Source of the DNA: Macrostomum lignano
Lineage: Eukaryota
Reading direction: 5' to 3'
Assembly (NCBI GenBank): GCA_002269645.1
Contig: NIVC01001505.1
Coordinates: 186,001-250,000, forward strand
DNA: 64,000 nucleotides
The notes below the pieces were generated by a model that did not search any database, had not been told where the DNA came from, and worked only from the letters and a program-made list of their open reading frames with translations. Shown in pieces: positions 2,739-64,000 of this stretch. The position numbers were made by a program, and so were the translations under genes. Each line of letters starts with the position of its first letter. Position 1 is the stretch's first letter.

Positions 2739-5700
2739 ATGGTAAGGTCTTGTGTGTTCTTCAGTTTTATGGCACGAATCACTGTTGGGATCCACCTATA
2801 CCAGCCCGAAACAGCTATGGTCAGAATCCTGCAGTCTTCTTCACCCCAGTGGAGTCCCCAGTCCCCAGGCGGAAAGTGATAATTAAGTGGGAATAAGCAA
2901 ATTACAGAATCGCATTCACTGTCAAAATAGCTGTTTACAGACATGAACTAGAAAGAAGCGAACGCATTTCTGGCTGTCAGAAATTCAATCAAGCCTCAAA
3001 TCGTTCTGCAGGCGACGACAACCCAGTTGATTGGCAGGGACGTTCTGCTGCCAGAGCAGCCTCGGATCCTGGTTCTGCACGAGCCTCAGCCGCTGCCGAA
3101 GCCGCCGTCGCTGACCATCGAGGAGCAGCCGGCTCGGTTCTACCGATTTCGCTACGAGTCGGAGATCGAGAAGGACAGCGGCAGAGTTGGCGGCCTGCTG
3201 CTCGGCAGGAGCTCCACCGATGGCAACAAGAGCTTCGTGAGAGTTCGCGTCAGCGACATCGACCCAGCTGTGCACTCGCAGCTGCAGCTGACTGTGTGCA
3301 CCGTGAGCGCCGAGGAGAAGGCTCCTCATCCGTACTACCTGCACGGAGACCACTGCAGCAACGGATATTTCCAGCTGAAGAAGACCGTGGACTCAGCTAT
3401 TGGGGGCAGTGAATGGGAGATCACGTGAGCTTCATTGATCTGCTGTTTTTTTTCATTTTTTAGATGCAGGGGGGTTGTGTGCACCCTGGCGCACTTTAAG
3501 CGACATAGGCACACAACCGGCGAGAGGCATTACTGCCCATTCCGCCGACTTCCCTGAGCAGGCATACAAGCGCGCGGATACGCAGGCACACACTCACACA
3601 GGAGTGTACAGCGGCCCTAACTTTATTTTATCGTTAGGCATGTACGCTTCACTGCGCCTTGGGGGGTTGGCTCTCAAGGCTGTTAATTGCACGAGCAGAG
3701 CCAAGCCGAGTTTCCAATTCAGCCCCAAATTAATGTGACTGCACTTGGAATCGAGCCTGGGTCGCTGGCACACCAGAGCAGCTGCGCTACCGCTGGGCTA
3801 CGGCCCCCCTTTGATCTGCTGTTACTCTGAGATGAATTCACAACGCCAATTTCAAAGCCAATCTCAAAGCCAATCTCAAAGCCAATCTCAAAGCCAATCT
3901 CAAAGCCAATGTTAAAGCCAACCTCAAAGCCAATCTCAAAGCCAATCTCAAAGCCAATGTTAAAGCCAATCTCAAAGCCAATCTCAAAGCCAATCTCAAA
4001 ACCAATCTAAAAGCCAATCACATAACCAATCTAAAAGCCAATCACATAACCAATCTAAAAGCCAATCACAAAGCCAATCTCAAAGCCAATCTCAAAGCCA
4101 ATCTCAATGCCAATCATCTCAAAGCCAATCTCAAAGCCAATCTCAAGGCCAATCTCAAAGCCAATCCCGAAGCCAATCTCAAAGCCAATCTCAAAGCCAA
4201 TCTCAAAGCTAATCTCAAAGCCAATCTCAAAGCCAATCACAAAGCCAATCTCAAAGCCAATCCCTAAAACAATTTCAAAGCCAATCTCAATGCCAATCAT
4301 CTCAAAGCCAATCTCAAAGCCAATCACAAAGCCAATCTCAAAGCCAATCCCTAAAACAATCTCAAAGCCAATCTCAATGCCAATCATCTCAAAGCCAATC
4401 TCAAAGCCAATCTCAAGGCCAATCTCAAAGCCAATCCCGAAGCCAATCTCAAAGCCAATCTCAAAGCCAATCTCAAAGCTAATCTCAAAGCCAATCTCAA
4501 AGCCAATCTCAAAGCCAATCTCAAAGCCAATCCCGAAGCACTATCATAGCCATCAGCTACATATCGCATTCGCAAGACCCCCCCCCCCAACACCAATGCA
4601 GCTTCAACCGCCTGGCCGTGATCTGCGTGACCAGGAAAAGTCAGAAGGACATTGAGAGAGCAGTGGAGCTGAGGCGCGCAAATGTCCCCAGTCTGCCTGA
4701 TGGTGAGTCTATTAGTACTATTATTATTGTACTACTTTAAGTAATGTTGCCACTTTTTTTTACTATATTAAAAACTCGCATTTGACTTTGTGTGCAGCAG
4801 TGGAAAGTTCCAAAGTGGAATACACCAGCCGCAGCATGGGTTCGATTCGGCTGGCAATTTCATTGCAATTCACGGACACCAGAGGCATGCACTGGTGGCA
4901 GAGCACGGTGTACAGTGATCCTATTAATGATGACAGTAAGTTCAAGATGGTCTGTGACTCATTGCTGGTCTGGGGTTAAATTTAAGTGATTTGGGATTTG
5001 GGATTTGGTAATTGGGATTTATGGATCTGGGACTCGGTATCTACGCTCGTAGAATTCGAAGTCTAGGACTCATATGTTGGATTCGGGATCTTGGATTCAG
5101 GATCTGGGATTCGAGATCTGGGATTCAGGATATGGGATTCGGGAACTGGGATTCAAGATTTGGGATGCAAGATCTGGGGTTCGGGATCTGGGATTCGAGA
5201 TTTAGGATTCGGGATCTGGGATTCGAGATTTGGGATGCAAGATCTAAAGTTCGGGATCTGGGATTCTGGGGTTCGGGATCTGGGATTCGGGATCTGGGAT
5301 TCTGGGGTTCGGGATCTGGGATTCGGGATCTGGGATTCGGGATCTGGGATTCGAGATTTAGGATTCGGGATCTGGGATTCGAGATTTAGGATGCAAGATC
5401 TAAAGTTCGGGATCTGGGATTCTGGGGTTCGGGATCTGGGATTCTGGGGTTCGGGATCTGGGATTCGGGATCTGGGATTCGGGATCTGGGATTCGGGATC
5501 TGGGATTCGGGATCTGTGTTTCTAAATGTGAGATTTGGGATCTGGAGCTTGTTATCTGGAATTCGGAATGTAGAACTCGGAATCTATGTTCAAGTATATG
5601 CTAAGACTTACGGGAAAATTTCAAAGTTTTTACAAAATATCTGATTTAATTTATTACCTATTAATTGAAAAATTCACCATTCAGAACAGAAGAAATCCAT

Positions 5701-11348: not shown

Positions 11349-13048
11349 GTGATTGGAGGAGACATTCTGCTTCAAGCCGAGCCCCAGATCCTCAGCCTGA
11401 AAGAGCTGCAGCCGCCCTCGCTGACCATCGAGAAGCAGCCGGTTCGGTTCTACCGATTTCGCTACGAGTCGGAGATCGAGAAGGACAGCAGCAGAGTTGG
11501 CGGCCTGCTGCTCGGCAGGAGCTCCACCGATAGCAACAAGAGCTTCGTGAGAGTTCGCGTCAGCGGCATCGACCCAGCTGTGCACTCGCAGCTGCAGCTG
11601 ACTGTGTGCACCGTGAGCGCCGAGGAGAAGGCTCCTCATCCGTACTACCTGCACGGAGACCACTGCAGCAACGGATATTTCCAGCTGAAGAAGCCTGTTG
11701 ACGCATTGAGAGATTCTGGTGGTGAATGGGAGATCGCGTGAGTAAACATTCATGGCTGACATACGGACAGCCAGTTCAATATTCCTCAGCAGCAATATCT
11801 AATGATTGAATTAAAGACTAGATTAGACTAGAAATTTATAGTTTTATTTGCAAAAGTAATAAATGTTATGGAAATTCATGATTGACTCTTCAGCTTTGAG
11901 AGACTGGCTGTCATCTGTGTCCAAAGAAAAACTAAGAAAGACATCGAAAACCGCATGGAAGCCAGACGCAGAAATGTTCCTCAGCTTCCAAATTGTGAGC
12001 ATTTTTCTTTTCATATCGTCTCGTTTCCGCTGTTGGAGTCCAATTTAAGAAGGCTTACATACAAACGTGGCGCTGTTTCAGGTCCCACAGCTCCATCAAC
12101 TCAATACACAACCAAAGACTTTGGTCGCATTCGACTGGCGTTCTCGCTCTCATTCAGCGATATCTTCGGTAGAGGGGGGCAGCTGAGCACTGTGTTCAGC
12201 GACGAGATCGTCAGTGAGAGTGAGTTTCTCAGTTTCGTTCTGTACTCTCAGTCTATATTGGTTATTAATTAATGTGTTTCATCATTTTTTAGGGGAAAAG
12301 AAGACTATTCGGGTTGATTGTCTGAACCCAGCGGAAGTGCCAATGGAGGGCGGCAGCATGCTGGCGATCCACACCGTCACCCCTACAACAGGTGCGCTCG
12401 GTTTCAAAACTATTAAGAATTTATGGAACCAGATATAAGTTGTGAAGCACTGCGCTCATATTTGAATTTCAGGCATTCAGAAGAGTGACTTAAAGGTACA
12501 TTTCAAAATGTTCCCAGTCCTCAATGAAGTCACGGGAAAGAGAACTGAGTTCGTTGCCGACGTCAAAGAAGTTAAAAAGGTAATATACCTATATTCCAGT
12601 ACAGAAAGGAGAATTTCGCCTGACTATTATATGAGGATGTAGTGTTCGCACCATCCTAAATTGGTATAATTTTAAATGTCCTCACATGCATTTAAATATT
12701 TCTAAACAGCTAACTGTTGGAATGCTTTTGACACGTTTGACTTCCAGCACCTACTGCTTGTTAGAACTCCCGATTTGAGGAATGCAATTGTCGGTGACCG
12801 TCAGAAATGTTCGGTTGTTGTTCACAGCCACGGAGGGAAGAGTGAGGAGCTCAACATTTTGTTGGGTCTGTTCAACAGCTCTAAATGGAACCCCGGAACA
12901 CCGCCAAGTACGTACTTGTACCTTTAAGAAAGTTTTAAAGTTGGCAAACTTTTGTTTCTCCCTTCACGAGTTTTTAAATAAATTTTCAAATACACTTTGT
13001 GTTTTTGCAGAGTCCGGAACTGCTGTGAAGAGAGCGCGGCCAAGTTGA
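11349..13048 (+). CDS. Rel-homology-domain protein, copy 2 (start exon not located)
   Basis: Exons 11349-11737, 11894-11994, 12082-12219, 12293-12391, 12473-12579, 12748-12907, 13011-13048 (KSGTAVKRARPS*). All introns GT-AG and the frame is intact (343 codons plus stop). Confidence 0.88.
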
Positions 13049-13647
13049 CTCTGCTGATGAGCTGAAGCTTTTCCAACTGCCCAGAATTTACCAGTAAATT
13101 GCACTCGAAATTAGCTTCTAAAAATTGTTTTGATTCTCAGTAGAATTTTAGCCTTGAAAATTTTTGTTTTAAAATAATTAATAAGCTGGCTTTAAATATT
13201 CTCACTATAATATTGATTTGCTTTGGTTAGATTAGAATCGAACTTATTGTCCTAAAAATCTTTGAGCTGTTTTTCTTCTGCCTAAAACTTTTCTACATGA
13301 GTCATTCTGCATGAGTCGGGTATCAATGGCTCGCGCATAAATTTGATCGTATAAAGTTGACCATCGTGCGTTCGACTGTGGCACTTAACCGATTTCTAGA
13401 GAAAGCCCTGTCACGAAATATCAAGCTATTGTAATATTGGCCTAATTACGAGTACGTGTCGCAAATCTTTGATCCAGAATTTCTTTCAAAAAATTTCATC
13501 GGAATTTTTATCTTGTGTTGTGCAGTCGCTACCATTTAAAAGTTTAAATGATGAAAAACTGCCTTAGTTCCGCTTGTCAACCGGTTTACCTGGCCTGTGA
13601 TTATTTTTTCAAATCTTCCTTTTATCATCTGCTATGTTAATCTAAAT

Positions 13648-13805
13648 GGTGATGCTGGGTTAATCCCAGTGGTGATGCTGGGTTAATCCCAGTGGTGATG
13701 CTGGGTTAATCCCAGTGGGTGATGCTGGGTTAATCCCAGTGGGTGATGCTGGGTTAATCCTAATGGTGATGCTGATGGAAATCCAAATGGTGATGCTGGG
13801 ACAGT
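13648..13805. repeat. 23-24 bp minisatellite GGTGATGCTGGGTTAATCCCAGT, related to the 8250 and 23071 arrays
   Basis: Direct reading; each unit contains the CTGGG-TTAAT-CCCAG palindrome. Confidence 0.9.
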
Positions 13806-13849
13806 TCCTAATGATCAGTGACAATAATTCTAAATATAGTTACTATATA

Positions 13850-14286
13850 ATGAGGTGAACCAAAAGTCCGTGCGCTTTTTGTATGCACATTTTTAGGCGC
13901 TTATTATTTCTCTCATGAACAACATACATAATCAAGTGACGTCTCATTCGAAAGAGCATATTTTGCCGAACCAAACCACGCATGTTTTAATTCTGGTAAA
14001 TATTTCCAGTCACTGTCAGCTCTACTGAAATGAGTGCTACCAGTCGCGATAATCTCGCTATTCTGCGACATTACTGGAAGCTCGGCTTCACAGCAACGGA
14101 CGCAGCTCAAAAGATTCGCGAAACTGAAGGGCAGGATGCTCTTCAGGACAGAACAGCACAGAAGTGGTACCAGCGCTTTTCGAGTGGCGACACGAGCCTC
14201 GAAGTTCGGCCACGTTCTGGTCGACCTACCGACCTATTCTGTCTATTTTAAGTCAGAAAAACGCACGAACTTTTGGTTCACCCTAA
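13850..14286 (+). mobile_element. Internally deleted mariner (Tc1/mariner) element, 437 bp
   Basis: TIRs ATGAGGTGAACCAAAAGTCCGTGCG and rc TTAGGGTGAACCAAAAGTTCGTGCG, flanked by TA (13848-49, 14287-88). ORF 14030..14251 encodes a mariner N-terminal HTH (..RTAQKWYQRFSSGDTSLEVRPRSGRP). No DDD catalytic domain. Confidence 0.9.
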
Positions 14287-14321
14287 TAGGTTTCACTAAG
14301 CAAAGCCCGTGCGTTCTCTCC

Positions 14322-14332
14322 GGGGAAATTCC
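14322..14332 (+). promoter_or_regulatory. kB-consensus site GGGGAAATTCC
   Basis: Exact match to GGGRNWYYCC; GGAATTTCC also occurs at 14784-14792. Confidence 0.4.
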
Positions 14333-14906
14333 ATGGATTTTTCAGAGACAAACCGTGGGACTGCCAGTTACATTTGTATTTTCACTATACAATGTACGTC
14401 TCAGTGTCTTTGAAGCAAGTTACAGCAGTATTACCTGTCGCTTCAACGGCAAAAAATGAGTTAAGGAGGAAGCTGCATCAGATTCATGTAAGTACTTCCT
14501 TACTCTACTTCACATACTTCTATACTGTACTAACATTACTTCGTACACGACACTTTCAGCGCTTTAAAGCTTTTTTCAGTCAAAAGGAATATCTATCGAA
14601 AAATGGAAACACTGTCTCCACTTTTTGATGGCTATTAGTGGCACTAAAAATTAGTTTTTTAGACTGATCACCAATCCAATACCGATTCGATGAACACATC
14701 AAAACTCAGATAATTTCTGTTCAGTTTAGTTTTGCTATTCGCTTAGTACCTTGTTTTGACGGTTTTTGCCACGGTAGTTCTATGGAATTTCCACGGAGTT
14801 TGCCATAGGCTATTTTTAGAACTGACGAAAAAAACGGCAATTTAAATAGGAACTTTTATAGCTGTAAGCTCTGTAGAAGTAGCATAGCTAGGTCAAACTT
14901 AGGAAC

Positions 14907-15950: not shown

Positions 15951-16804
15951 TTTATTAGTCTTGATGTTCCTGGCTTTGAGTGCGCTTTACCATCTGCACC
16001 GTGCGCTCAGCGGCCCCGTCGGCTTGCTTATAATAGATTGGGGATTCGAGCTTCCGGATCCCGTTAGTCGTAAGCCAGGAGCGCAGCGATAAATTACTTT
16101 CAATTTTTTTACCAACAAAAGGTGAAGAGCTGTTTGATACATGCTGAGATGTGACTTTATGCAGTTAGTTATGCTCAGAGTACATGCGGTTCAGAGACTG
16201 CAGTGAGGCATTGACAGTTTCAAGAGCGTATTCTGCGCTCTTGATGCCTGTAACATCAAGACTGCATTTTGTGTGCCAATGCACTGGCGTACAGGCGGCT
16301 AAAATTAATCCATGGCAGCAGTTCGCCTACCTAGAAAACAAGCAAGCCGTAACTTGTTTGAAATTCCACCTGGCTAAATGTACAGGTCACAATGCAGCAG
16401 CTGCAGATTCATTCGCCAGCTCTGGGGCAGCAACAGCTGGCAGGGGGCTACGCTAAGCATCTGTTGTCCTATGAGCCTGACCGGAACCCAATGATTGCGG
16501 CTACAAGCACGCAAGCGGTGAGCACACGACTCTAAACCCAGTTTTTAGCTAAAATAGATACAATATCTAGAAGTAACTACGAGTGCGATCGGATTTTGTA
16601 ACATTACTCCCACGATATTTTTGTCTTCATTAGTTTTTAAAAAAGGCACCAGTTAGATCAATTCATCTTATCTGCACCTCTCGCTCTGTGAAATAACTCT
16701 TTCCGAAATTGTCAATGCGATTTTAGCTTCTAAATGAAATCGAAGCAAGTGAAGTCGAGTACTGCGAATATTCTGGATCTGTAACAGCTTCAGACGAAAC
16801 TCAG

Positions 16805-18572
16805 GTGATTGGAGGAGACATTCTGCTTCAAGCCGAGCCCCAGCTCCTCAGCCTGAAAGAGCCGCAGCCGCCGTCGCTGACCATCGAGGAGCAGCCGGCT
16901 CGGTTCTACCGATTTCGCTACGAGTCGGAGATCGAGAAGGACAGCAGCAGAGTTGGCGGCCTGCTGCTCGGCAGGAGCTCCACCGATGGCAACAAGAGCT
17001 TCGTGAGAGTTCGCGTAAGCAGCATCGACCAAGCTGTGCACTCGCAGCTGCAGCTGACTGTGTGCACCGTGAGCGCCGAGGAGAAGGCTCCTCATCCGTA
17101 CTACCTGCACGGAGACCACTGCAGCAACGGATATTTCCAGCGGAATAAGTCTGTTGATTCATTGAGAGATTCTGGTGGTGAATGGGAGATCGCGTGAGTA
17201 AAAATTCATGGCTGACACATGAAAGGTCAATTTAATATTTGTTGGCGACAATATTTAATTTATTAATTGTCAGATTTGATGGTACAGTGAGAGTTTTATT
17301 TTCGAATTAAAGTAGTGATACTGCATGATTGACTCTTCAGCTTTGAGCGACTGGCTGTCATCTGTATCATCAGGAAGACTAAGAAAGACATCGAAAACGG
17401 CATGGAAGCCAGACGCAGAAATGTTCCTCAGCTTCCAAATTGTGAGCATTTTGTTCTTCGTGATCCTTTACAAAAACTGCTACTTTCCTTATAAACAGAA
17501 AAAAAATGGAAGCCTCGCTTTTGCTGTTGGAGTCTAATTTAAGAAGGCTTACATACGAACTTGGCGCTATTTTAGGTCTCACAGCTCCATCAACTCAATA
17601 CACAACCAAAAACTTTGGTCGCATTCGACTGGCGTTCTCGCTCTCATTCAGCGATATCTTTGGCAAAGAATGGCAGCTGAGCACTGTGTTCAGCGACCCG
17701 ATCGTCAGTGAGAGTGAGTGTCTTAGTTTCGTTCTGAACTCTCAGTCAAAAATGGTCATTAGTCAATGTGTTTCACCATTTTCAGAGGAAAATAAGACTA
17801 TACAGGTCGATTGTCTGAACCCTGTGGAAGTTCCAAAGGAGGGCGGCAGCATGCTGGCGATCCACACCAGCACCCCTACAACAGGTGCGCTCGGTTTCAA
17901 CGGTATTAAAAACTTTTGATCTGAAATTATCACACAAAATAAATACCGTGATTCCTACTGTTCGAATTTCAGGCATTCAGAAGAGTGACATAAAGATACA
18001 TTTCATTGTCACCAATGAAGCCACGGGAGACCGAACTGAGTTCGTGGTCGATGTCGATGTTGTTAAAAAGGTGATATGCTTATTTTTATCCTCCACCCGT
18101 ATCTAGATACGCTCGTAGTACAGAAGGGAAATTTTGGCCTGACTATTTTATGAAGATGTAGCTTTCGCACCATCCTTAAGTGGTGTAACTTTTAATTCCC
18201 TCACGTGCATTTGCTGTCAGGCCGAGAAGTAGCTGAATTTTAAATGGCTTTAACAACCTTTGACCTCCAGCACCTACTGCATTTGAGGACTCCCGATTTG
18301 AGGCGCACCACTGCAACTGTCAATGAGCGGCAGAAATGTTCGGTTGTTGTCCACAGCCACGGATGGAAGGGTAAAGAGCTCAGCATTAATTTCGTAAGAG
18401 ATCAGGCCAACAGCTCCAAGGGGAACCCCGGAATACCTCCACGTACGTTCTTGTGCATTTGAGAACGTCTAAAATTAATCATTTTGTGCTCGAATATTTA
18501 TTCTTTCACTCAATAAACTCTCGGGTTTTTGCAGAATCTGGGACTTCTCTGAAGAGAGCGCGGTCAAGTTGA
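16805..18572 (+). CDS. Rel-homology-domain protein, copy 3 (start exon not located)
   Basis: Exons 16805-17193, 17341-17441, 17576-17713, 17786-17884, 17973-18070, 18271-18442, 18535-18572 (QSGTSLKRARSS*). Frame intact. Upstream ~16120-16800 is a near-identical duplicate of ~10715-11345. Confidence 0.88.
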
Positions 18573-19281
18573 CACTGCTGCTGAGCTGAAGGCTTCGTTT
18601 GACTGCCCAGAATCCACCTGTAAATTGCACCAGTTTCCGAAATTTGAATAGCCATGAAAATTGCTTTGTTGAATTTCATTTTTTAACCAATAAATGGGCT
18701 GGCTATAAATACTCTCACTAGCTCGTATGATATTTTTTCACTGGTTCGATTAGCTTCGAACTCATTGTTGCCTAAATCATTGAGATGTTTTTTTGCCTGC
18801 CTAAAATCTTCCATGTGAGTAGCAATGGTCTGCGGTTGCGTATTGAGTTGCTGATAAAATTGACCTTACATGAGCCAACCAAGAACCAATTCTCTCCTAC
18901 AAAAATTATGATGCTTTTGTGTTGAATTTCATGAAAGAAATATAAAAGAAGTATGCACAAATTGGTTATTTGATGTGTTCCTTTACTTCCAAGACTCTCA
19001 GTAATCAAGGAACAATCACGTCTAGCTTCTTTGCTAGGCAACCCAGTTATCAAATGAAGGTACTGCTTATCTTGACTCCGGTTTGAGAGATCTTCTTGTA
19101 GTTCTCGGACTTCTTGACTCGTTAGACGTCTATGTTTCATAAACCAGGTCCACGTTCCTTTACTTCCACTGAAGTCGTTTTCGGCCGGTATATGTCGTTT
19201 GGACCAATCAGAAGCTTCGTATTAACAATGGGGATCCCTGCGCCTTAATGCGGTTTCAAATAAGCCTTCTCCTTCTAGCGG

Positions 19282-19837
19282 TGTCTTAATGCACCCTAGG
19301 TATAGCTCCGGTATTCACTGATAGTCCTCTAAGATCTATCAGGGTAGTCCTTCTGGAGACTACGAGCGTACAACCAATGGAGTCACAAATGGACTCAAGA
19401 GTCTCAACAGACTTAACACTATAACAATAGTGAGTCGACTCAAACAACGGGCGCAAATGAGCAAGGCTTACCGCAACAACTCGACCGAGTCTCGATTGAC
19501 TTGGTGATTGGGAAGTCCTCCTAAGGCTTCCTCTTCGAAGCTTCTTCTTCCTTCTGGAAGGCAAAATCGGAAGCTCGGGTCCGCTCTGGACCACTTGTAT
19601 TTATAGGCAATCGGACCCCGCATGAGGTCGTTGAGTTCATGCTCTTAAATGTCAAAGGGTCACGGATTGGTTGCTGTCAAACATGGCAGGTTAGAAAGTT
19701 ACTCCATTGGTTTAGTGTAAAAGCGCATGATTGGTTACTGCATTTGAGTTATTTTTGGTTACATTTGATTGGTTCACCTGAGTCCGGGCTGAATGATGCA
19801 TCTCACCTGGGGTTTGAGCTGACAAGTGCAGGTTACA
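19282..19837 (-). other. LTR-like segment carrying a CCAAT/TATA promoter on the minus strand
   Basis: Minus strand begins TGTAAC, has four CCAAT boxes (19640-19775), TATAAATA at ~19598-19605, and ends ...AAGACA. No TSD or PBS was found. Confidence 0.3.
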
Positions 19838-20255
19838 CGTGATGGGGGGATTTCTAAAATTAGCATGCTCGAGATTTCTCTCTTCCTATTGTTTGATTCA
19901 AATATATGTATGGTTCAGCGCATATTTTTATACATGCTACTTGTCTTACTACTATGTAAGTAGGACGTTAACAATTTTATCACTTTTTTGAGGGAGGTAA
20001 AACACTCTACATATGTTTGTTTCTCTCGTCTCGTAATTAAGTGTCCTACGTACGGCACACTTGTTGCACATCACTGTTCAATTTTTACGTCAAGATTATT
20101 TATAGAAGTGGCGCACTGCTCTGGCCACTACACTGCACATTCACACTCGTACATTCAATGGTACAAGGTACTTACTTCGCCTTGAGGGCATAAAGATTCA
20201 TCTTTGGTACCTTATCCTAACTATCAAAGCCAAACTTAAAATTTACGAGCCTAAA

Positions 20256-22560
20256 ATGGTGAGTTGCTTCCTGCCAAACTAATAGCTTTAAAAATTTTAA
20301 AGAAACTTTTCCAAGTTGATACTTCTCCTGCCCAAGAGCTAGCTAATTATTTCATGTGATTTCCTAAGACAAGGTCATGCGTTATCCAGACCTCATTTGC
20401 TACATGAAAAAGCTTGACATTTTCTAGGGTTACTGGAATTCAGAAGCTTCACACTGTCAAAGGGTACACTGATCCTCCTTCGCACACTTGTGACAGGCCT
20501 TCAGCTATTGAATTATCAGGATTTATAGCTTTGCTGTGCCACCATGCGATGTACTTTGTACGTATATGCATTTGAAAGGACGATTAGATAGAGCTATCAT
20601 GGTAATAAATGTACACAGGAGGGTTTTTGGTACCCTGGCGCAATGCCGGGCATCAGTTCTTTTTAAGAAGGCAATCCATTAGATCAAGCCATCTTATCTG
20701 CAACTTTGGCTCTGTTAAATATTGCCACCACGTAAAAATAGAAGTTTTGCTGTAAATTTTAATAAAGGTGGGTTATTACCCTGGTCGAAAAACAACACTC
20801 TTTCCGATCTTACCGATTCGATTTTAGCTTCTAAATGAAATCGTAGCAAGTGAAGTGGAGTACTGCGAATATTCTGGATCTGTAGCAGCTTCAGACGAAA
20901 CTCAGGTGAATGGCAGAGACTTTCTGCTTCAAGCGGAGCCCCAGATCCTCAGCCTGAAAGAGCCGCCGCCGCCGTCGCTGACCATCGAGGAGCAGCCGGC
21001 TCGGTTCTACGGATTTCGCTACGAGTCTCAGCAAGCAAGCTACCACCTTGGCCGCCTGCTGCTCGGCAGGAGCTCCACCGATGGCAACAAGAGCTTCATG
21101 AGAGTTCGCGTCAGCGGCATCGACCCAGCTGTGCACTCGCAGCTGCAGCTGACTGTGTGCACCGTGAGCGCCGAGGAGAAGGCTCCTCATCCGTACTACC
21201 TGCACGGAGACCACTGCAGCAACGGATATTTCCAGCTGAATAAGTCTGTTGACGCATTGAGAGATTCTGGTGGAGAATGGGAGATTACGTGAGTAAAAAT
21301 TCATGGCTGACACATGAAAGGTCAATTCAATATTTGATGGCGACAATATTTAATTTATTAATTGTCAGATTTGATCGTACAGTGAGAGTTTTATTTTCGA
21401 ATTAAAGTAGTGATAATGCATGGTTGACTCTTCAGCTTTGAGAGACTGGCTGTCATTTGTGTCATAAGGAAGACTAAGAAAGACATCGAAGACGGCGCAT
21501 GGAAGCCAGACGCAGAAATGTTCCTCGGCTTCCAGATTGTGAGCATTTATCTTTTCATATCGTCTCGTTTTCGCCGTTGAAGTCCAATTTATTGAAGCTG
21601 ACGTACAAACTTGGCGCTGTTTCAGGTCCCACAGCTCCATCAACTCAATACACAACCCAAAACTGGGGTCGCATTCGACTGGCGTTCTCGCTCTCATTCG
21701 TCGATTTCTTTGGTAGAGAAGGGCAGCTGAGCACGGTGTTCAGCGACCCGATCGTCAGTGAGAGTGAGTTTCTCATTTTCGTTCTGAACTGTCAGTCAAT
21801 AATTGTAATTCTTTAATGTGTTTCACAATTTTTAGAGGAATTAAAGCTTATTCAGGTCGATTGTGTGAACCCAGCGGAAGTGCCAAAGGAGGGCGGCAGC
21901 ATGTTGGCGATCCACACCAGCACCCCTACAACAGGTGCGCTCGGTTTCAACACTATTTAATAACTAATTTTCTGCTGAAATTCTCGCACAAAATAAATAC
22001 CGTGATTCCTACTGTTCGAATTTCAGGCATTCAGAAGAAAGACATAAAGGTACATTTCGCTGTCATCAATGAAGCCACGGGAAACCGAACTGAGTTCGTT
22101 GTCGATCTCGTTGAAGTTAAAAAGGTGATATGCTTATCTTTACCCGTATCTAGGTATTACAGAAAGGACTATTTTATGAAGATGTAGCTAGTGTTCATTC
22201 GTTGCTTAAGTTGTGTAATTTTAATTCCTTTTGACACGTTTAATTTCCAGCATCTACTGCTTGTGAGGACTCCCGATCTGAGGCACGCAACTGTCAGTGA
22301 AAGTGAACGGCAGAAATGTTCGGTTGTTGTCCATAGCCATGAATGGAAGAGTGAGGAGCGGAGCATTGTGTTTCTAAGAGATCTGCCCAACAGCTTTAAG
22401 TGGAACACCGGAACACCTCCACGTACGTTATGTTTTTAAGAAAGTTTCAAAGTTACAAACATTTAGTTTTTCCTTTGCGAGTTTTAAAATTTATTTTTCA
22501 ACACACTTTTGGATTGTTGCAGAATCCGGAACTGCTGTGAAGAGAGCGCGGCCAATTTGA
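20256..22560 (+). pseudogene. Rel-homology-domain gene, copy 4: altered DNA-recognition loop and a 2-nt frameshift in the second RHD exon
   Basis: ATG|gtgag at 20256-20258; exons 20906-21288, 21436-21538 (103 nt vs 101 in paralogs; GGCGCATG vs GGCATG), 21626-21763, 21836-21934, 22027-22124, 22251-22422, 22523-22560 (KRARPI*). The loop reads FYGFRYESQQASYHLG. Confidence 0.75.
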
Positions 22561-23070
22561 CACAGCTAATGAGCTGAAGCTTTGTGCAACTGCCCAGAAT
22601 CCACCTGTAAATTGCACTCGAAATTCTATAAGCTGCGAAAAAAGTGTTTTATTTCTCAGTAGGCTTTTAGCCTTAAATTTTTTTTAATAGTTAATAAACA
22701 GGTTTTGAATATTCTTATTATAATATTATTTTGCACTGGTTCGAAATCACGGAGATGTTCTTTCTGCCTAAAGATTTTCTGCATGACTCATGTATCAATG
22801 GCTCGTGTATTAATTTGATCGTAACTTTGACCATCGTGCGTTCGATTGTGCCGATTTTCTAAAGAAAGCACTATCACGAAAAATCAATCCTTCTTCTGTT
22901 TTATGACAGGCTTATTTACCACTACCCAACACAAATCTTATAGCCAGGATTTCCTTCAATCCTTCAATCAATCAAGTAGTGGTAAATCAATCAAGTTCGA
23001 TCAATCAATCAATCGATCCTTCAATAAAGTTCGAGTGAATTTCGGTTTAATTTCTTTTTCGGCAAAAAAG

Positions 23071-23215
23071 AGATCCCAATAGTGATGCAGGGTTAATTCC
23101 AATGGTGATGCTGATGGAGATCCCTGTGGTGATGCAGGGTTAATTCCAATGGTGATGCTGATGGAGATCCCTGTGGTGATGCAGGGATAATTCCAATAGT
23201 GATGCTGATGGAGAT
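23071..23215. repeat. GGTGATGC-type minisatellite, third member of the family
   Basis: Contains GGGTTAATTCC, GGAGATCCC and GGGATAATTCC units. Confidence 0.85.
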
Positions 23216-23224
23216 AAATTCGCG

Positions 23225-23895
23225 GCCCCGCATGTAAGGTCACAGTGAGGGTGCGTCAGATGGCGCGCCGCAGAGCTTGAGAGCGGAATTCGAAAGTCCG
23301 CCCCGTTGGCAGTGTCGGGTGCCCCTGCGTCGCACAGCAGGCAGTCCACGTTCATGTATCGGCGGGTTTGGGCCTGAGCCTGCCTGAACGGGCCCTGCAA
23401 GATGTGCAGCAAGGCGTCCTGAACAGGTTGGGGGCAGTAGCCCTCGGACTGGATCACGTGGCCCGCAAGTTGAAGTTGCCGATGATGATGGATGATGGAT
23501 GATGGACGGGCGCTGCAGCTGCCCAGAATCCACCTGTAAATTGCACTCGAAATTCTATAAGCTGTACAGAGGTACAGAGCCTCTTTCCCGACGCTCTCGA
23601 CAGCTCGAAAGGCCGCGCGTAGCAGCTGTGATTAGCGTAGCCGTCAGCGTCCACGTCTCGGCTTAGTATGCAGGACGGTTTCGACCACCGCCAGGCCACA
23701 GCCGAGCTCTCTGGCGGTCGGGCAGCGCTTCGGACTGGAGGACGACCCAAATCGAACGGAAGGCCGCCCAGGCAAGTCCTCTGCGCCGTCGGAGGTCCTC
23801 TTTCACGTGGGGCACAAGACCGCCGAGGTAGGTGAACCGCTGGCAGCGTGCGAACGTGGTCGTCTGCCCGTCTGCGCCGCGATTATGTTCGTTGC
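23225..23895 (-). mobile_element. Degenerate 3' fragment of an RTE-like non-LTR retrotransposon reverse transcriptase ORF
   Basis: Minus strand reads FTYLGG..DLRRRRGLAWAAF..VETVL..AETWTLTA..RQLQLAGHVI..CPQPVQD, typical of the region after the RT domain in RTE-clade LINEs. It is interrupted by a 51-bp insert at 23514-23564. Confidence 0.75.
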
Positions 23896-24155
23896 TTCGG
23901 CACTTGTTGTGCACACCAGAATTTAATTCTTACGTCAAATTTATTTATAGAAGTTGAAAGAAGGGACAATGTTTGCTACGAGCGTTCGTGAAAGGCTCGC
24001 AGTGGGGTGCGCTCCTACGGCCACTACACTGCACAATCGTACAAGGTACTTCGCCCTGCTGGCATAAAATGCATTTTGGTACCTTATCCTGACTATCAAG
24101 ATCAACTGCTCTTGAAATCTATTGAATTTGTTTCTTATTGAAATTTACAGACAAG

Positions 24156-26679
24156 ATGGTGAGTTGCTTCCTGCCAATATAATAGCTGGATCAACCAATT
24201 TCCAGGTTGATACTCCACCTGGCCAAGAGCTAGCTAATTGTTTCATGTGATCTAAGACAGGTCATGCATTATCCAGACCTCTTTTTCGACTCGATATTGC
24301 ATAACTGTTCTAGGCTAGGGTTTATGAAATTCAAAAATTCAAAAATGTACTCTTACTCATGACAGGCCTTCAGCTACTTAATTATCAGGATTTATAACTT
24401 ACATGTAGCTGTAGCTGTGCCACCATGTGATGTATATTTGAAGGGACGATTAGATAGAGTTACCAGTGATAATGTCATTAATATTTGCTGGAGTGTTGCG
24501 TGCACCCTGGTACAATGCCTTCGGCATCATCGTCAGTAACAAGTAGGCAAGATTACTTTTTAATGCCGCTGAAACGCATCGATCAATGCTGACGTTTCGA
24601 GATGTAAAAATGGAAAGTTCAAGCCAGCCTCTACTCGTTTTGAAGGCAACGACGACCCAGGTGATTGGCAGAGACTTTCTGCTTCAAGAGGAGCCCCAGA
24701 TCCTCAGCCTGAAGGAGCTGCAGCCGCCGACGCTGACCATCGAGGAGCAGCCGGCTCGGTTCTACCGATATCGCTACGAGTCGGATATCCGTATGGACAG
24801 CGGCAGAGTTGGCGGCCTGCTGCTCGGCAGGAGCTCCACCGATGGCAACAAGAGCTTCGTGAGAGTTCGCGTCAGCGACATCGACCCAGCTGTGCACTCG
24901 CAGCTGCAGCTGACTGTGTGCACCGTGAGCGCCGAGGAGAAGGCTCCTCATCCGTACTACCTGCACGGAGACCACTGCAGCAGCGGATATTTCCAGCTGA
25001 ATAAGTCTGTTGATGCATCGGGAGATTCTGGTGGTGAATGGGAGATCGCGTGAGTAAATAAATTAAGCTAACAACAAGCTTCTAATTAGGGTTTTCGTAA
25101 AGTAGTTGTATAGTCGCTTTTATTTTAGCAATTCTGGTAGTTTCAATTTAAACAAAAAAAAACGAAAACGATTTCTTATTTCTCATCCAGCTTTGACAGA
25201 CTGGCCGTCATCTGCGTGCCAAAGTTAAGGAAAATGGAAATCGAGAAAAGCCTGGAAGACAGACGCAGAAGCTTTCCACAGCATAGAGATTGTGAGCTTT
25301 TTTACCTACTTGCATTGATTATTTAGCTGAGGAATCAATTTTACATGTACGAGCGAATCATGGGTACCATGCAAGCTTCTATCTCACGGATGCAGATTGA
25401 GTACGCTTATAACTTGAAAATCAAAAAATCTTTTTGCGTCGTGACACCATTTATTCCTTTTATAAACTTTGAAAATTTGACAGTGTTGCTCGTTTGGCCT
25501 CCCTTTCGTTAAGACTGTGTGTAAATTAAGAAATCGGAAGTCCTTTTTGGCTGATTTTTGGTCTGCTCTTGGCATTCCTAATTATCAACTAAATATTTCA
25601 ATTTAGATTACTGTGAAAAGTAGCTAAATAAAGATTTGAATCGTAAAATCTCTAACATAGTGTGAAAAATTTCGCCATCATAGATCTTAAATTCCCTTGT
25701 GGCCCATCTTGTGTATACATGATCTTTGGTCGCCATAAAAGAAATGGCAGCATTAAAGAAACGTCTGTGCTCTCTAAGAGTGGTGGGAGATGACGGGGTT
25801 TGACTATTGCTGACTGACGAAAGCAGACAAGCCTCGGTCTCGGTCTTCCTGTGCGAGGCTCGACCCTCCACTTTTTTGTGCCACGTCACATAAGGATGTT
25901 CGTAGAGTTTCTGATCAAAGAGAAATTTTTGCTTGCAACTTTGTGCTGTTCAGGTCCCACAGCCTCATCAACTCAATACATCAGCCAAAACTTGGATCGC
26001 ATTCGTCTGGCGTTCTCGCTCTCATTCAGCGATGTCTTCGGTAGAGAATGGCATCTGAGTACGGTGTTCAGCGACCCGATTGTCGGTGAAAGTGAGTTTC
26101 TCGATTCTGTCTTCAACCCTCAGTTGATGATTTTTTATTAATATCTCGAAATAATTTCAGATCTAAAAAAGAGAATTGAGGTCGATTGTCTGAATCCAAC
26201 GGAAGTACTAATGGGGGATGGCAGCATGCTGGCGATCCACACCGCCACCCCTACAACAGGTGCGCCTTGTTTCGAAGCTATCCAAGATATTTCAGCTACT
26301 TTTACATTGAATTTAATGTTGATCCTTCAAACTAAAATGCTTCTATTGCAGGCATTTGTAGGAGTAACATAAAGGTGCATTTTGCAGTTACCAATAGAGC
26401 CACTGGAAGCCAAACTGAGTTCGTGGCGGACGTCGAGGTAGTTAAGAAGGTAAACGCAAACCCTTTTATATGTTCTGCATTACAGGAGCACTTTTAATAG
26501 TAAAATTAATTTGCTTCCAGCACCTCTTGCTAGTGAGGACGCCCGATGTGAGGAGTTCAGGTTTCAAGGACCGGATGAAATGCGAGGTCACTGTCCAAAG
26601 CGACGGATTCAAAAGCGAGAGCCTCTGTATTGTTTTTCTGCCAGAATCCCGAACTTCTCTGAAGAGCCTGCGACGATAA
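24156..26679 (+). CDS. Rel-homology-domain protein, copy 5 (last intron absent)
   Basis: ATG|gtgag at 24156-24158; exons 24646(or 24661)-25049, 25191-25291, 25954-26091, 26161-26259, 26352-26449, 26521-26679 (..FLPESRTSLKSLRR*). Frame intact. Confidence 0.85.
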
Positions 26680-27079
26680 TGATGACGTAAGCAGCTGACG
26701 TCAAGCTCTTAAATATAAGCGTTGACTTTAATTCAAGACAGTCTTTGATTATGAACATTATGACTCAAGTCTGATATTCAAAGCCTCTATACATGGATCG
26801 TACATGTACAAGCGTCTATGAAAAAATGATGCATAGGATTTTGGTTTCGAATAAGCGAAGTTTATTTAGTATTTAATAATATACTAATTTAGTATGAGTT
26901 AAATATATTGTTTCCATTGCCACTGTGTTGGTGGAAAAGGCGTTTAAACTGCCGGGTTGAAGTGGCTGGCTTTGGTGGGGTACGTGAGTCAGCCTATCTA
27001 GATGTCTTGTTTGCTGCTCAGTTTTTTTCTTTTACTTTTTCCTCCACCGTACAATAGATTCGTCTGCAAGTTTTGGTTC

Positions 27080-27600
27080 ACCTAAAAGTTTTGCTTCCAG
27101 CTACTACTTGTCGTGCTTTCTTTCTTTCCCCGCTGTTCAAAGCACAACTCCATATGTACAAACAGCCCCTGATCTGTGCATCTGTATACTGTACTGTACA
27201 GTGCTATTTCTGTCGGGAAGCTACTTTCGTGTGTACATATCGGGTGTCCGCTTTTTGCCTGTCTCTCTCTCTCTCTGTCTGTCGCTCCGTACAACTTTTG
27301 TTCACGAGAATTCCCCCGGATTTACCGTGGTCCAACCACGGATTAAAATTCGTTTTACTCGTATTATTTTATTTTAGCATGGAGATGGACATTAGTGAAT
27401 CGACTTTGCTGGAACCTACTTTGATGGTGTACATATGTCAGCTTTTTGTCTCTCTCTCTCTCTCTCTCTCCCCGTCTCTGTCTCTCCGTACAACTTTTGT
27501 CCACGAGAATTCCCCCGGATTTACCGTGGTCCAACCACGGATTAAAATCCGTTATATTATTATATTTTAGCATGGAGATGGACACTAGTGAATCGGATCG
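27080..27600. repeat. ~190-bp tandem duplication with CT microsatellite and hairpin; possibly a non-autonomous Helitron-like element
   Basis: Units ~27255-27415 and ~27445-27600, each with CCGTGGT-CCA-ACCACGG. The duplication is seen directly; the Helitron assignment is a guess. Confidence 0.45.
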
Positions 27601-27889
27601 TTTAGGAAAATTTGTTTGTAAAGGACCACTAGGAACACTTCGTTATATTCTAGTAAGTCCTTGTTGTTTGCTTTGATAAATAATCAATGGCCCAGTGGAC
27701 AAACGTAAGTATTGCTTGCTTCTCATTCATTTTGATTTCTTGGCAAAAGTTTTCATTTAAAACTGGTTTTGAAGACGTTTTTTAATGAAGTTTTTAAATT
27801 TTTTACAGGTGTAAATCTTATGTAGCTCTGTGTAAATCTAAAAAAATTAATATTTCCAGTAAACTGTTGAAAGCTATTAACTGAAGTTA

Positions 27890-28330
27890 AAAGTTGAAAG
27901 CTTTAAGTAACTTGACATAGCTCCGGGCATTGGGGGCTCCGGGAGGCCGGATACAGCGGGGAGGCGTTGCAGCCCATTCTGCTGGCTCCTGGCAACCACA
28001 GGTGGTGCCGGTGCCCGCAGCGCGGTCCCCCTCTGGAGAGACCAGGAGGTGGATTGTCGCTCGCCCGGTAGCACTTGGGTAGCGGACAAGCTGGCAGAGA
28101 TTCTCGGGCCTGAAAACGTCGGAGAGGTCCGGGTTTGGCCGAGGTAGGGGAGACTGTCCTGAGTAAAGACGGGGCATTCACAGATGAAGTGCTCCGCATG
28201 CTCAACACCGGAGAGGCAGATCGCTATTCCCTGCAGATAAAGAGGCCCGGCAAAGGAGCCATGGCCTGAAAGGGCCATGGTCACCGCCCTGGTGTCCCTG
28301 TGGTTGAATCTAAAGCAGGGCCGGAGCAAA
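27890..28330 (-). mobile_element. 3' fragment of a non-LTR retrotransposon (CCHC zinc-knuckle region)
   Basis: Minus strand reads [35 protein letters not shown], resembling the LTGHG / C..E..EH..C.CP motif of R1/I-group LINE C-termini. Confidence 0.7.
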
Positions 28331-28482
28331 AAGTAATGTTTTAACTTGACTCTTGTAGATAATACAAATTGATTTTTCGGTAAGGAATCAGAAATGAAAC
28401 TTACTTATTTTGGTTTAGGTTGACAAAAGACATCTAAGTTAAAAACATTAGTTAGCTGCAAGTTCCTTGTAATATGCAGAGA

Positions 28483-28502
28483 GTAAATCCCCGGAAATTC
28501 CC
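28483..28502 (-). promoter_or_regulatory. Paired kB-like sites upstream of RHD copy 6
   Basis: GGAAATTCCC (28493-28502) is the reverse complement of GGGAATTTCC. The adjacent GTAAATCCCC is the reverse complement of GGGGATTTAC. Confidence 0.5.
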
Positions 28503-28845
28503 TGGCCGTGCCAAAAAAGCGCTTTAAAATGAACACACAGGGACTGCACTGAGCTATTTTTAGAAACAGCGTCAGTTAGGAATCTCGTACAGCAAAAGCA
28601 GTGTTATTGCTGCTGGCCTTACATTTGCGTTTTTTCACAGAAAAGAGCAGAAAAGAAGTAGTATTCAATATATTTCTAACTTAGTGGAAGCAGGCAGACC
28701 TGTAGTGGAAGCTGGTTCAAGAATGGAAGCCTCATCCAGAGCGCATTATAATTAGTGGATTATTTCACAAAGCTAAAAAATTAAAATGTGAAATTAGCAA
28801 AGCGTGCATGAAAAACCACAACAACTGCTCTATGAACGTTTCTAG

Positions 28846-31296
28846 TATCAATCGACCTTTTCCGGGCCTCTCGGACCCCCCGTCAACACTGGAATTGCTG
28901 AGCACCTCTACATTGCTGAGTTGCAGCCGCCTTCGCTGACCATCGAGGAGCAGCCGGCTCTGTATCACCGATTTCGCTACGAGTCGGAGATCGAGAAGGA
29001 CAGCGGCAGAGTTGGTGGCCTGCTGCTCGGCAGGAGCTCCACCGATGGCAACAAGAGCTTCATGAGAGTTCGCGTCAGCGACATCGACCCAGCTGTGCAC
29101 TCGCAGCTGCAGCTGACTGTGTGCACCGTGAGCGCCGAGGAGAATGCTCCTCATCCGTACTACCTGCACGGAGACCACTGCAGTAACGGATATTTCCAGC
29201 TGAAGAAGCCTGTTGATGCATTGGATGGTAAAGCAGTTTGGGACATCTGGTGAGTGGCACGAGGAGCGACTGGGCCACGGGAGGGCTGGTTTCCACTGCA
29301 AAATCGTGCTCCCTGAACAGATTTCAGGGACAGGAACAGTTTTCGCCCTGAAGTTTCTAGTGTGTCCCTGCCAGAGACTCAATTGCCCGTTTTTCAGGTA
29401 GATGACCGCTGATTTAGGTAGATCAGCTGCCTATGAGCTAGATGAACCTATCTGGTAAATGGACCGCCTGGAAAGGCATCATGCCTCTGGGGATCCTAAG
29501 CCTAGAAGTGCGTTTACCGCTTGTCGACTGGCTCTCACTTTAGCACGTTGGAGTGAGATCAAATGTTCGCTGCCCTCATGTATAATACATGTTAGGGAGT
29601 TCGTGCTGATCTGGTTGAGCTTGGAAGCCCACGGTCGACCCTGTCTGAGGGGGGGGGGTAGTTTTGCGCCCGCAAGTACACCAAGCTGGACTGACGATGA
29701 GTCAAGCCGTGAAAATAATAAAAGTTGGTACACCCAGCCTCTTCAAGAGCACGCCAAGCTTTAGCTGCTAGCCCTATTTAACAACAAACAGATTTCGCAA
29801 AGATCAGCTTTTTTCATTTACGCTTGGGAAATAGGATTTTACCATAGACAAACTCGTTCGAGAGAAATATTTTTTATACTGACTCGGAAACGATGAAATT
29901 TGTTGTCAGTTATAGCCTATCTACGGTCGTGAATTAGCATTTCATTGGCAATATCAGCATTAGTATATACTGTCAACCCGCCTCTACTTAAAATGAAATG
30001 TTGTTTATCTATTAGAGTGAAGAAACTATTTGCAAAGAGTCAAGGATGCCTCTATGTTCGCTACGCTCCTCGCTTTGTTCCTAAGGAGTGAAGCGAATTG
30101 AACATTGAGGCTTCCTAGGAAGAGTCGCTCCAGTTTAGTTGTACAGGGTTGCTTATAGTGATTTGCAGGCATGCTCGAAGTTTCCCACGCACTTGAATTT
30201 TTCAGCTTCGACAGGCTGTCCGTGATCTGTGTGCCAAAGAAGAACAAAGCGAGCATGGAGAAAGCCATGGAAGCCAGACTCAGGGATGTGCCGACCCCCA
30301 GCGATTGTCCTACAGGGCCGTCAGCTCAGTACACCCAGACCAACTTGGCTCAGATTCGTCTGGCATTCTCGCTCACCTATTGCGATATTTTCTATCGAGA
30401 ATGGCTGCTTAGCACAGTGTTTAGTGACAAGATCGTCAGTGACAGTGAGTTTCTGTGATACTCTGATCGACTCATGTTGTTCTGTTCATGTACAGAATGA
30501 TTCCACAAATGTGTGTTTTAGAGGAAAAGAAGAACATTGACGTCATCGCGTTGAATCCGGCGGAAGCGCCAATGGATGGCGGCTGCACGATCGCCATCCA
30601 CACTAAGGCCTCCACCGCAGGTCTGATCAAGGACCACTAGTAGTAGATGGACGGGGCAGTTAGTGTCTTGAAAAGTTTTAGTAGAAATGGTAGCACTATG
30701 TTCAAAGTTCCAAATGTTTTAGACCCAACGAGGGTATTTGTACGAGAATAATCTATTCTACGAAACGATCGAACGTCGCTATTTGTTTTAGGCCAGGCAC
30801 TCTCAAAATTGACTTAAAATTGCAGGTAAAATATTTTAAACTTTTTAGGAATTCAAAAAGGTCAAGTAAAAGTCCACTTCTCGTGCTTCAACGATATCAA
30901 AAGAGAGCGCGTTGTCTTCGTTAGCGACGTGCACGAACTGAGGAAGGTACGGTCAGTTTGAATAAGGTTTGGGAGTCTGCATAAATTCTGTGCCTACTCA
31001 CTTTTGATGCTTCCAACTGCTGTTCCTCCAGCACATTTTACTCGTGAAATCACCCGACGTCCGGCACGAAACTACAAATGACCGGCTTAAGGCTGAGGTT
31101 AGCGTCCTTAGCAACGGATTCAACAGCAAACTGCTTGACATCGTTTTTTTCCGACAATCTTTTCCACCAAATCTGGGTGAGGACGCAAATATTTGACACT
31201 TTCTAAAATTCAATTCAGTAAATCAATCATTTTTTTCAATTTGCGAGTATTTAAGTTGCAGGAGTCGGGCGTTCTTTGAAGAGGCCTTTAAAGTGA
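28846..31296 (+). CDS. Rel-homology-domain protein, copy 6 (one intron absent; start exon not located)
   Basis: Exons 28846-29249, 30206-30444 (fusion of two paralogous exons), 30522-30620, 30849-30946, 31032-31176, 31262-31296 (GVGRSLKRPLK*). Frame intact. Confidence 0.85.

Positions 31297-33248: not shown

Positions 33249-43735
<10,487 letters not shown>

Positions 43736-44585: not shown

Positions 44586-64000
<19,415 letters not shown>

Follow-up and report, generated by a model that had tools for sequence, protein, structure and literature searches.

A short exon 2 segment probably homogenised by gene conversion across a tandem array of divergent Rel-homology-domain genes in Macrostomum lignano

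Concerted evolution of tandemly duplicated genes has classically been illustrated with the primate fetal globins, in which short conversion tracts with homogenised silent sites are bordered by divergent flanks. The protocadherin clusters of fugu provide another example: paralogues share more than 99% identity over part of the variable exon, their silent sites have been homogenised, and the content of guanine plus cytosine (GC) at third codon positions (GC3) is 54-69% versus 38-45% (PMC1852091). Conversion has also been described in the zebrafish and human protocadherins (Noonan et al., 2004, as cited in PMC1852091). We describe here a related arrangement in the flatworm Macrostomum lignano (assembly Mlig_3_7, contig NIVC01001505.1, positions 186,001 to 250,000), a stretch of 64,000 nucleotides (nt) to which we will refer as the window. 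The sequence is eukaryotic, with introns of the GT-AG kind and many satellites, and it holds six tandem plus-strand copies of a very divergent gene encoding a Rel-homology domain (RHD). Inside exon 2 of these paralogues, a segment of about 290 base pairs (bp) appears to have been homogenised by recurrent interlocus (non-allelic) gene conversion. Our literature searches retrieved no paper on the RHD genes of Macrostomum, nor any on gene conversion in this genus.

The homogenised segment (hereafter, the block) spans about 272-290 nt, lies within exon 2 (467 nt in copy 2) and is nearly invariant in all six copies. The 18-mer that opens it is found six times on the plus strand at one mismatch or fewer, at the block starts of Table 1, with a chance expectation of 0.01. 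The block of copy 1 (287 nt) is 91.6-96.9% identical to those of the other five copies, and identity among all copies is 90-96% by self-blastn. The lowest value, that of copy 4, is due to a divergent patch treated below; outside this patch, copy 4 differs from the 19-copy consensus at 2 of 231 sites, and copy 1 differs at a single one. The original prediction, made from the letters of this stretch alone, had proposed a GC-rich block of about 280 bp, nearly identical in the six copies, and this is borne out, with a GC content of 0.59-0.62 in the block compared with 0.45 for the region. It had also set the few differences between copies 1 and 6 within the block against a similarity of only about 60% in their next exons, and both values were recovered: 12 differences over 292 nt (95.9% identity; nine of them in the 273 core coding sites) and 40 of 99 nt in exon 3, where the peptides that had been quoted are about 48% identical.

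In protein terms, the block corresponds to the initial ~91 codons of the N-terminal RHD subdomain (SLTIEEQP...RFRYESE...PHPYYLHGDHCSNGYFQL), which extend from the domain start, past the RFRYESE recognition loop, as far as the C-x-x-G-Y-F strand (C-S-N-G-Y-F-Q-L). Several details of the earlier picture require correction at this level. The homogenised unit had been taken to be an exon, and it is instead a segment inside exon 2, since this exon diverges like the others over its first ~100-150 nt and its last ~50 nt. The N-terminal RHD had been considered uniform, which holds for its first ~91 codons but neither for the rest of the subdomain nor for the ~30-nt patch in copies 4 and 5. The next exons had been assigned to the dimerisation (IPT) part; exon 3 (FxRLAVICV..., quoted as FNRLAVICV...) corresponds to p65 FQNLGIQCVKK and still lies in the DNA-binding subdomain, within the RHD_DNA_bind match, whereas the putative IPT part begins only around exon 5. 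Thus, diversification affects most of the DNA-binding subdomain as well as the IPT part. Lastly, the flanking introns had been described as unalignable. This is correct for the old lineages, as the introns of copies 1 and 6 gave no blastn match to any other copy, but not for copies 2, 3 and 4: these duplicates are younger, and self-blastn aligns them at 78-81% over the full unit, including the introns. Exons outside the block gave 67-77% identity, or no match, between copies 1, 5 or 6 and copies 2-4 by the same approach.

The conservation of synonymous sites, also noticed at the outset, was quantified by the Nei-Gojobori method on codon alignments. Synonymous divergence (dS) in the 91 core codons is 0.008-0.12 and non-synonymous divergence (dN) 0.024-0.093 over all 15 pairs, so that dN and dS are about the same within the block. 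In exons 3-7, on the other hand, dS reaches 0.07-0.5 among copies 2-4, 0.26-1.1 between copy 5 and copies 2-4, and from 0.6 to saturation in any pair that includes copy 1 or copy 6; what remains of exon 2 on either side of the block resembles the other exons in dS. A uniform dS across exons, which had been named as evidence against conversion, was therefore not seen, the block being more than ten-fold lower. In each pair, the core shows fewer differences than the remaining coding sequence, with Fisher p below 1e-7 for all between-type pairs (e.g., 6 of 273 core sites versus 241 of 579 remaining sites for copies 1 and 2, p = 8e-41); among the young copies 2-4, the contrast is marginal (p = 0.02-0.03) in two pairs out of three. 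The longest identical stretch, determined pair by pair (54-188 nt), always fell in the core, and none of 5000 permutations produced one as long, except for copies 2 and 3 (p = 0.0014).

Versions of the array, either homeologous (from other subgenomes) or allelic, are present on two other contigs, NIVC01000475.1 (seven copies) and NIVC01000109.1 (six copies in two adjacent sub-arrays, which may represent a real duplication or joined haplotypes), adding 13 copies with an equally conserved block. This gives 19 copies on three contigs, labelled A1-A6 in the window, B on NIVC01000475.1 and Ca/Cb on NIVC01000109.1; the 18 with downstream exons were used for the downstream comparison. In M. lignano, three subgenomes have been reported in one account (PMC10733133). 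Across the 18 copies, the block differs by 0-5%, or by 6-11% in three copies with a replaced patch, whereas concatenated exons 3, 4, 5 and 7 differ by 35-47% between lineages; copy 1 and B4 combine 0% difference in the block with 44% downstream. NIVC01000109.1 also contains a very divergent lineage, type X (L001 18306-19583 and L004 6890-8169), absent from the window and from NIVC01000475.1, and the array versions therefore differ in gene presence or absence. Furthermore, eight block sites (e.g., 130, 149, 213 and 240) carry alleles common to several types yet discordant between counterpart copies of different contigs: A is found at site 149 in A1, A5 and A6 and G in B6 and B7, while G at site 240 is restricted to the neighbours B5 and B6. 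Two of these eight sites are CpG transitions. Such cross-type sharing would fit short recent conversions within each array, and is regarded as soft evidence.

The edges of the block are sharp. Among types 1, 6 and X, identity in 24-nt windows climbs from 10-45% to 90-100% over a distance of 12-24 nt, and both edges fall inside exon 2: the 5' edge lies just before TCGCTGACC and the 3' edge just after CAGCTGAAGAAG, ~50 nt ahead of the exon donor. Tracts measure ~290 nt among these three types and 404 nt for copy 5 versus copies 2-4; the one common to copies 2 and 5 runs from about -64 to the donor at +323, and copies 1 and 5 possess an additional, older stretch of 75-87% identity upstream. Nested tracts with pair-specific ends are a product of conversion and are not expected of a fixed functional element. 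Phylogenetic comparison, one of the checks originally suggested, gave a star-like neighbour-joining tree for the block and a downstream tree resolving types 1, 6, X, 5 and 2-4.

Composition changes at the same place. GC3 is 0.76-0.81 in the block and 0.31-0.76 in other exon parts, with 0.31-0.67 in the last 16 codons of exon 2; a GC bias had been considered possible at the outset. Private derived variants (those of one copy or one counterpart set) comprise 21 changes from strong (G/C) to weak (A/T) bases and 5 in the opposite direction (binomial p = 0.0025), as polarised, approximately, against the consensus and with the proviso that short-read polishing may have changed single bases in this spectrum. 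They imply a mutational equilibrium GC of ~0.27, compared with the 0.61 observed. The block thus seems to be kept above its mutational equilibrium, as GC-biased conversion predicts, although selection for GC may be an alternative cause of its composition; on balance, we regard a GC bias of the conversion as plausible.

A natural negative control is provided by a sister cluster (L007, NIVC01000103.1 875938-899837; P0016-, P0021-, P0012- and P0033-type genes), with four tandem RHD genes of the same family, tandem layout, exon 2 architecture and three-contig presence, which differs in having no homogenised block. Its segment homologous to the block shows 29-39% nucleotide difference, 55-69% amino-acid identity and a GC3 of 0.52-0.65. 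Across the family, amino-acid identity is 51-66% in the block segment versus 28-40% in the rest, a ratio that predicts ~65-80% identity in the block of the window cluster; 87-95% is observed. Outside the patch, the block variants amount to 41 alleles, 14 synonymous and 27 non-synonymous, distributed over codon positions 1, 2 and 3 as 13, 12 and 16, and they do not differ from random mutation (p = 0.14). Moreover, copy 4, a likely pseudogene, is as homogenised outside the patch as the intact genes. Protein constraint alone is thus insufficient to account for the identity of the block, because the sister cluster is free to vary, the family ratio is too low, the variants resemble random ones and a likely pseudogene is homogenised too.

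Recurrent interlocus gene conversion is, in our judgement, very probably the right explanation, as the original prediction had proposed, and the depressed dS, sharp edges, nested tracts, conflicting trees, GC3 and excess of strong-to-weak changes all point to it. During the repair of DNA breaks, one copy would serve as template for another, and the mismatches would subsequently be resolved. As conversion needs near-identity, which is kept inside the segment, the island would be self-perpetuating; outside it, the divergence of 35-47% would block the extension of the heteroduplex, leaving sharp edges that recur near the same places. Mismatch resolution biased toward G/C probably drove the GC3 of the island to ~0.8. 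Homogenisation may have been continuous since the oldest duplications, with a shared recognition scaffold tolerated or favoured by selection and diversification taking place in the remainder of the RHD and in a small loop patch.

This patch, of ~30 nt directly after RFRYES, shows three replacement variants and two one-codon deletions among the 19 copies, all of them in frame. The variant of copy 4 recurs in B5 and that of copy 5 in B6 (Table 1), whereas Ca3, with an intact exon 3, reads ESQRRNSYELGR (L001 about 22314); B4 and Cb3 bear one deletion each. A search with 12-mers for donors of the patches of copies 4, 5 and Ca3 in the fetched loci retrieved only the copies themselves and a few isolated matches taken as chance, leaving micro-conversion from a fetched paralogue unsupported as the source of the patches. 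The patch may reflect either diversifying selection on DNA recognition or decay.

Several observations weigh against gene conversion as an explanation, or lessen the evidence for it. The patch has escaped homogenisation in two lineages, and conversion is therefore not all-pervasive. The edges nearly coincide in the three old lineages, which would also fit a discrete functional element; coinciding edges are expected for a homology-limited island too. All the copies compared belong to one species, M. lignano, which places the grouping of paralogues by species outside the comparison; assemblies of M. cliftonense and M. hystrix have been published (PMC10468722). The polarisation of variants against a consensus is an approximation, as stated above. 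Finally, Pilon polishing can move single bases between near-identical copies, which makes the cross-type sharing and part of the variant spectrum soft. P0009, a type 6 model derived from the ML2 assembly, and B7, the copy nearest to it in Mlig_3_7, disagree at two sites of the block, which may reflect a third allele or a polishing difference.

A more elaborate interpretation adds function to conversion: the island would be a maintained "constant region" in which conversion and selection together keep one DNA-recognition scaffold across an expanding RHD family, while specificity is diversified in the patch and the rest of the RHD. The variable parts would then be the indel-rich patch of the L1 loop and the remaining two thirds of the RHD, with the second DNA-contact loop and the dimer interface. 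We consider this unlikely; were it true, a repertoire of transcription factors, possibly immune-related, would be built on a framework-plus-variable-loop logic, in a phylum in which canonical NF-kB has yet to be found.

Purifying selection at the nucleotide level would dispense with conversion: the silent sites of the block would be frozen by a second role, be it as an RNA structure, a shared target of small RNAs, an element for splicing or transcription, or a further reading frame that overlaps the first. The near-coincident edges of the three old lineages would agree with this, as would the predicted RNA fold, slightly better than that of shuffles (z = -1.73; 9 of the 200 shuffled sequences folded equally well), and a +1 frame that is open across the block in copy 1. 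This frame is interrupted in copy 2, so an overlapping open reading frame (ORF) was rejected; an RNA element has little support, the z-score being too weak and an Rfam scan of the whole window giving no match. The even spread of variants over codon positions, 27 of 41 altering the protein, the variable length of the tracts between pairs and the freedom of the homologous segment in the sister cluster all argue against a frozen element, and neither the raised GC3 nor the AT-biased young variants are predicted by this model. Nucleotide-level selection is therefore held to be improbable.

Still less credence is given to an artefact of assembly, in which short or RNA-seq reads of many paralogues would map on every copy and Pilon would rewrite the copies toward one consensus. 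Mlig_3_7 was indeed polished by Pilon with Bowtie2-mapped Illumina and STAR-mapped RNA-seq reads (PMC5730564), and the two discordant sites of the type 6 allele may have such an origin. Reads would not map across a difference of 35-47%, so that polishing cannot create the identity, and the copies must have been near-identical already in the long-read consensus. Type-specific variants and whole patches have been kept and are common to counterparts on separate contigs (A4/B5, A5/B6, A6/B7 and Ca2/Cb1). Furthermore, the block recurs in the models of the UniProt A0A1I8 accession series, for which we assume an origin in ML2, an assembly built differently, and the variants private to type X are found there too (100% over 129 amino acids, aa); this agreement is not fully independent, ML2 and Mlig_3_7 having been built on the same PacBio data. 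Least probable of all is protein-level constraint combined with codon bias, according to which the recognition-loop half would be the most constrained and G/C-ending codons would hold its silent sites: the segment is in fact the best conserved of the family at the amino-acid level and its GC3 is high, but it tolerates ~35-60% amino-acid replacement family-wide, codon bias works on whole genes while GC3 drops here from 0.8 to 0.3-0.45 a few codons past the block, dN about equals dS, the likely pseudogene is equally homogenised, and the dS contrast already contradicts such a model.

As to the nature of the genes, the copy 2 protein matches Pfam PF00554 (RHD_DNA_bind) with 54.7 bits (cut-off 27; E = 1.5e-14; residues 93-274, profile positions 1-166 of 169) and aligns with the structures of p65, c-Rel and RelB at E ~1e-9, RFRYESE being placed over p65 RFRYKCE by phmmer. 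A profile of the six sequences aligns with RelB residues 16-285, covering both RHD subdomains (E = 7e-11), and the recognition-loop motif R-x-R-Y-x-x-E is kept in all 19 copies, save for G/Y variants at its first or second position. Pfam RHD_dimer gave no match at E <= 1 in the copy 2 protein. AlphaFold2, run on the six-sequence alignment with P0002 first, returned an unusable model (mean predicted local distance difference test score, pLDDT, 36.9). The proteins are short (333-411 aa in total), stop 30-60 residues past the RHD and bear a basic KRARP motif at the C-terminus; RHD_DNA_bind is the sole Pfam family found in them, with neither ankyrin repeats nor a long transactivation region. With the Rel/NF-kB proteins (p65/RelA, c-Rel, RelB, Dorsal) they have in common an RHD_DNA_bind match above the gathering threshold, the RFRY-x-x-E recognition loop and the basic C-terminal motif; they differ in their low identity to p65 and in lacking the ankyrin repeats that characterise NF-kB class I (p105/p100/Relish). 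By sequence criteria, they can be regarded as members of the RHD superfamily, and are not demonstrably NF-kB proper. Such divergence, and the lack of ankyrin repeats, fits previous reports that flatworm RHD proteins are long-branched and not clearly NF-kB, and that canonical NF-kB is unidentifiable in the phylum (PMC13563047; PMC11432056).

Relatives were sought with a word-indexed protein search, which returned eight proteins, all from M. lignano, and with an exhaustive HMMER search, which returned 23; the eight true relatives looked up were again all from M. lignano, some weaker matches having been left unchecked. Two long proteins of ENA (P0011 and P0020) were discarded as spurious matches, since they look like bacterial Ig-like repeat proteins. 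The RHD family is a sizeable expansion specific to the lineage of M. lignano and comprises at least two tandem clusters, both of them present on three contigs.

The gene models of the six copies, with their blocks and patches, are summarised in Table 1. Copy 4 is likely a pseudogene, as its sequence has a +2 frameshift in exon 3 and stops in the translation after it; a search upstream gave no match to exon 1. In copy 6, exons 3 and 4 form a single fused ORF (30207-30443) through loss of the intervening intron, and in type X, exons 5 and 6 are fused (L001 19188-19382); both intron losses are independent. No relic of type X or further RHD copy was found in the window, either between copies 1 and 2, beyond 33 kb or on the minus strand.

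Table 1. Position in the window of the homogenised blocks, divergent patches and RHD gene copies
Feature	Position	Strand	Remarks
Block, copy 1	3105..3391	+	Reference; 100% identical to counterparts on NIVC01000475.1 and NIVC01000109.1
Block, copy 2	11415..11701	+	96.9% to copy 1; within exon 2 (11271-11737)
Block, copy 3	16871..17157	+	96.5% to copy 1; within exon 2 (16727-17193)
Block, copy 4 (likely pseudogene)	20972..21252	+	91.6% to copy 1
Block, copy 5	24727..25013	+	95.8% to copy 1
Block, copy 6	28930..29216	+	95.8% to copy 1; both flanks unalignable with other copies
Divergent in-frame patch, copy 4	21025..21054	+	ESQQASYHLGR instead of ESEIEKDSGRVGG; tip of the L1 recognition loop
Divergent patch, copy 5	24780..24800	+	ESDIRMDSG; same patch in B6
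RHD gene copy 1 (type 1)	2741..7838 (start approximate)	+	Annotated product P0007, 359 aa; peptide equals the window translation
Copy 1 exons	Exon 2 end 3424; starts of exon 3 4602, exon 4 4798, exon 5 5685, exon 7 6743	+	Splice sites read
RHD gene copy 2	10935..13048	+	8 exons, all introns GT-AG, frame open to the stop, product of 411 aa
Copy 2 exons 1-4	10935-11060, 11271-11737, 11894-11994, 12082-12219	+	
Copy 2 exons 5-8	12293-12391, 12473-12579, 12748-12907, 13011-13048	+	
RHD gene copy 3	16392..18572	+	8 exons; stop-free translation equals annotated P0002 from MQQLQ on
RHD copy 4, likely pseudogene	20828..22560	+	Exon 3 (21436-21538) of 103 nt instead of 101
RHD gene copy 5	24547..26679	+	Close to annotated P0006; exons 2-7 by tblastn; in-frame ATG in exon 2
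RHD gene copy 6 (type 6)	28846..31193	+	Matched by ML2 model P0039

The units of the array differ in size and content. Unit 1 is twice as long as the others because satellites of 12-, 14-, 20-, 15- and 22-nt units fill the introns of copy 1 and the spacer that follows (3841-4532, 5079-5545, 5865-6485, 6986-7695 and 8266-8712). One same element, with 68-83% identity, is found after copy 1 (8877-9512) and after copy 6 (31789-32489), and may represent a dispersed repeat or else a remnant of the duplication unit. The interval between copies 2 and 3 contains, on the plus strand, a fragment of the N-terminus of a Mos1/mariner transposase (14000-14248; Pfam HTH_48, E = 1.5e-11). The P0002 model starts at 14392, just downstream of this fragment and ~2 kb upstream of the conserved ATG of exon 1 (16392), and is probably over-extended at its start. 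Two other public models, P0005 and P0008 (UniProt A0A1I8II91 and A0A1I8HPZ0), join neighbouring RHD copies: one such fusion involves type X and a gene resembling copy 4, the other copies 4 and 5. The annotation of the RHD array is unreliable.

Downstream of the array, the minus strand carries a gene for a class C, metabotropic-glutamate-receptor-like G-protein-coupled receptor (35674-36378 and 42302-43735; E = 7e-69 for Pfam 7tm_3 and E = 3e-56 for ANF_receptor). Simple repeats and satellites of very large size occupy 37202-38376, 44687-53320 and 54010-56869, including (CAGA)n over 1.2 kb, (GTTA)n over 1.6 kb and satellites of 23-31-nt units of up to 2.9 kb, and they are responsible for the extreme swings of GC skew in the composition profile of the window.

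The significance of the locus lies, broadly, in the longevity of the island: ~290 nt are held at 0-5% divergence among at least five lineages that are saturated at silent sites elsewhere. The sister cluster acts as a built-in control, and the three-subgenome background offers several snapshots of one array, so the island could be used to measure the minimal homology, the tract lengths and the GC bias of conversion in a flatworm. The locus also draws attention to a Macrostomum-specific expansion of short, RHD-only proteins, in a phylum whose RHD factors are poorly understood. From the practical point of view, the block will mislead phylogenies, orthology calls, the assignment of RNA-seq reads, probes for RNA interference and short-read polishing.

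Compared with the known systems, the RHD island shares with the teleost protocadherins the tandem arrangement of paralogues, the homogenisation of one coding part (92-100% here) within otherwise divergent genes, the conservation of silent sites, a raised GC3 in the converted part (here 76-81% versus about 31-76%) and a converted region that misleads phylogeny. Unlike in those clusters, the tract is shorter (~290 nt) and lies inside an exon of an eight-exon gene, the paralogues are far older outside it, with dS saturated, and the host is a flatworm with three subgenomes; moreover, the gene encodes a transcription factor, the tract being the DNA-recognition half of its domain with a small hypervariable patch. 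The classical tandem cases, such as the primate fetal globins, to which the block is alike in its short tracts, divergent flanks and homogenised silent sites, concern two young duplicates, while the RHD island is common to at least five old lineages and 19 copies. In this sense, it is a new and clean example of a known process, gene conversion.

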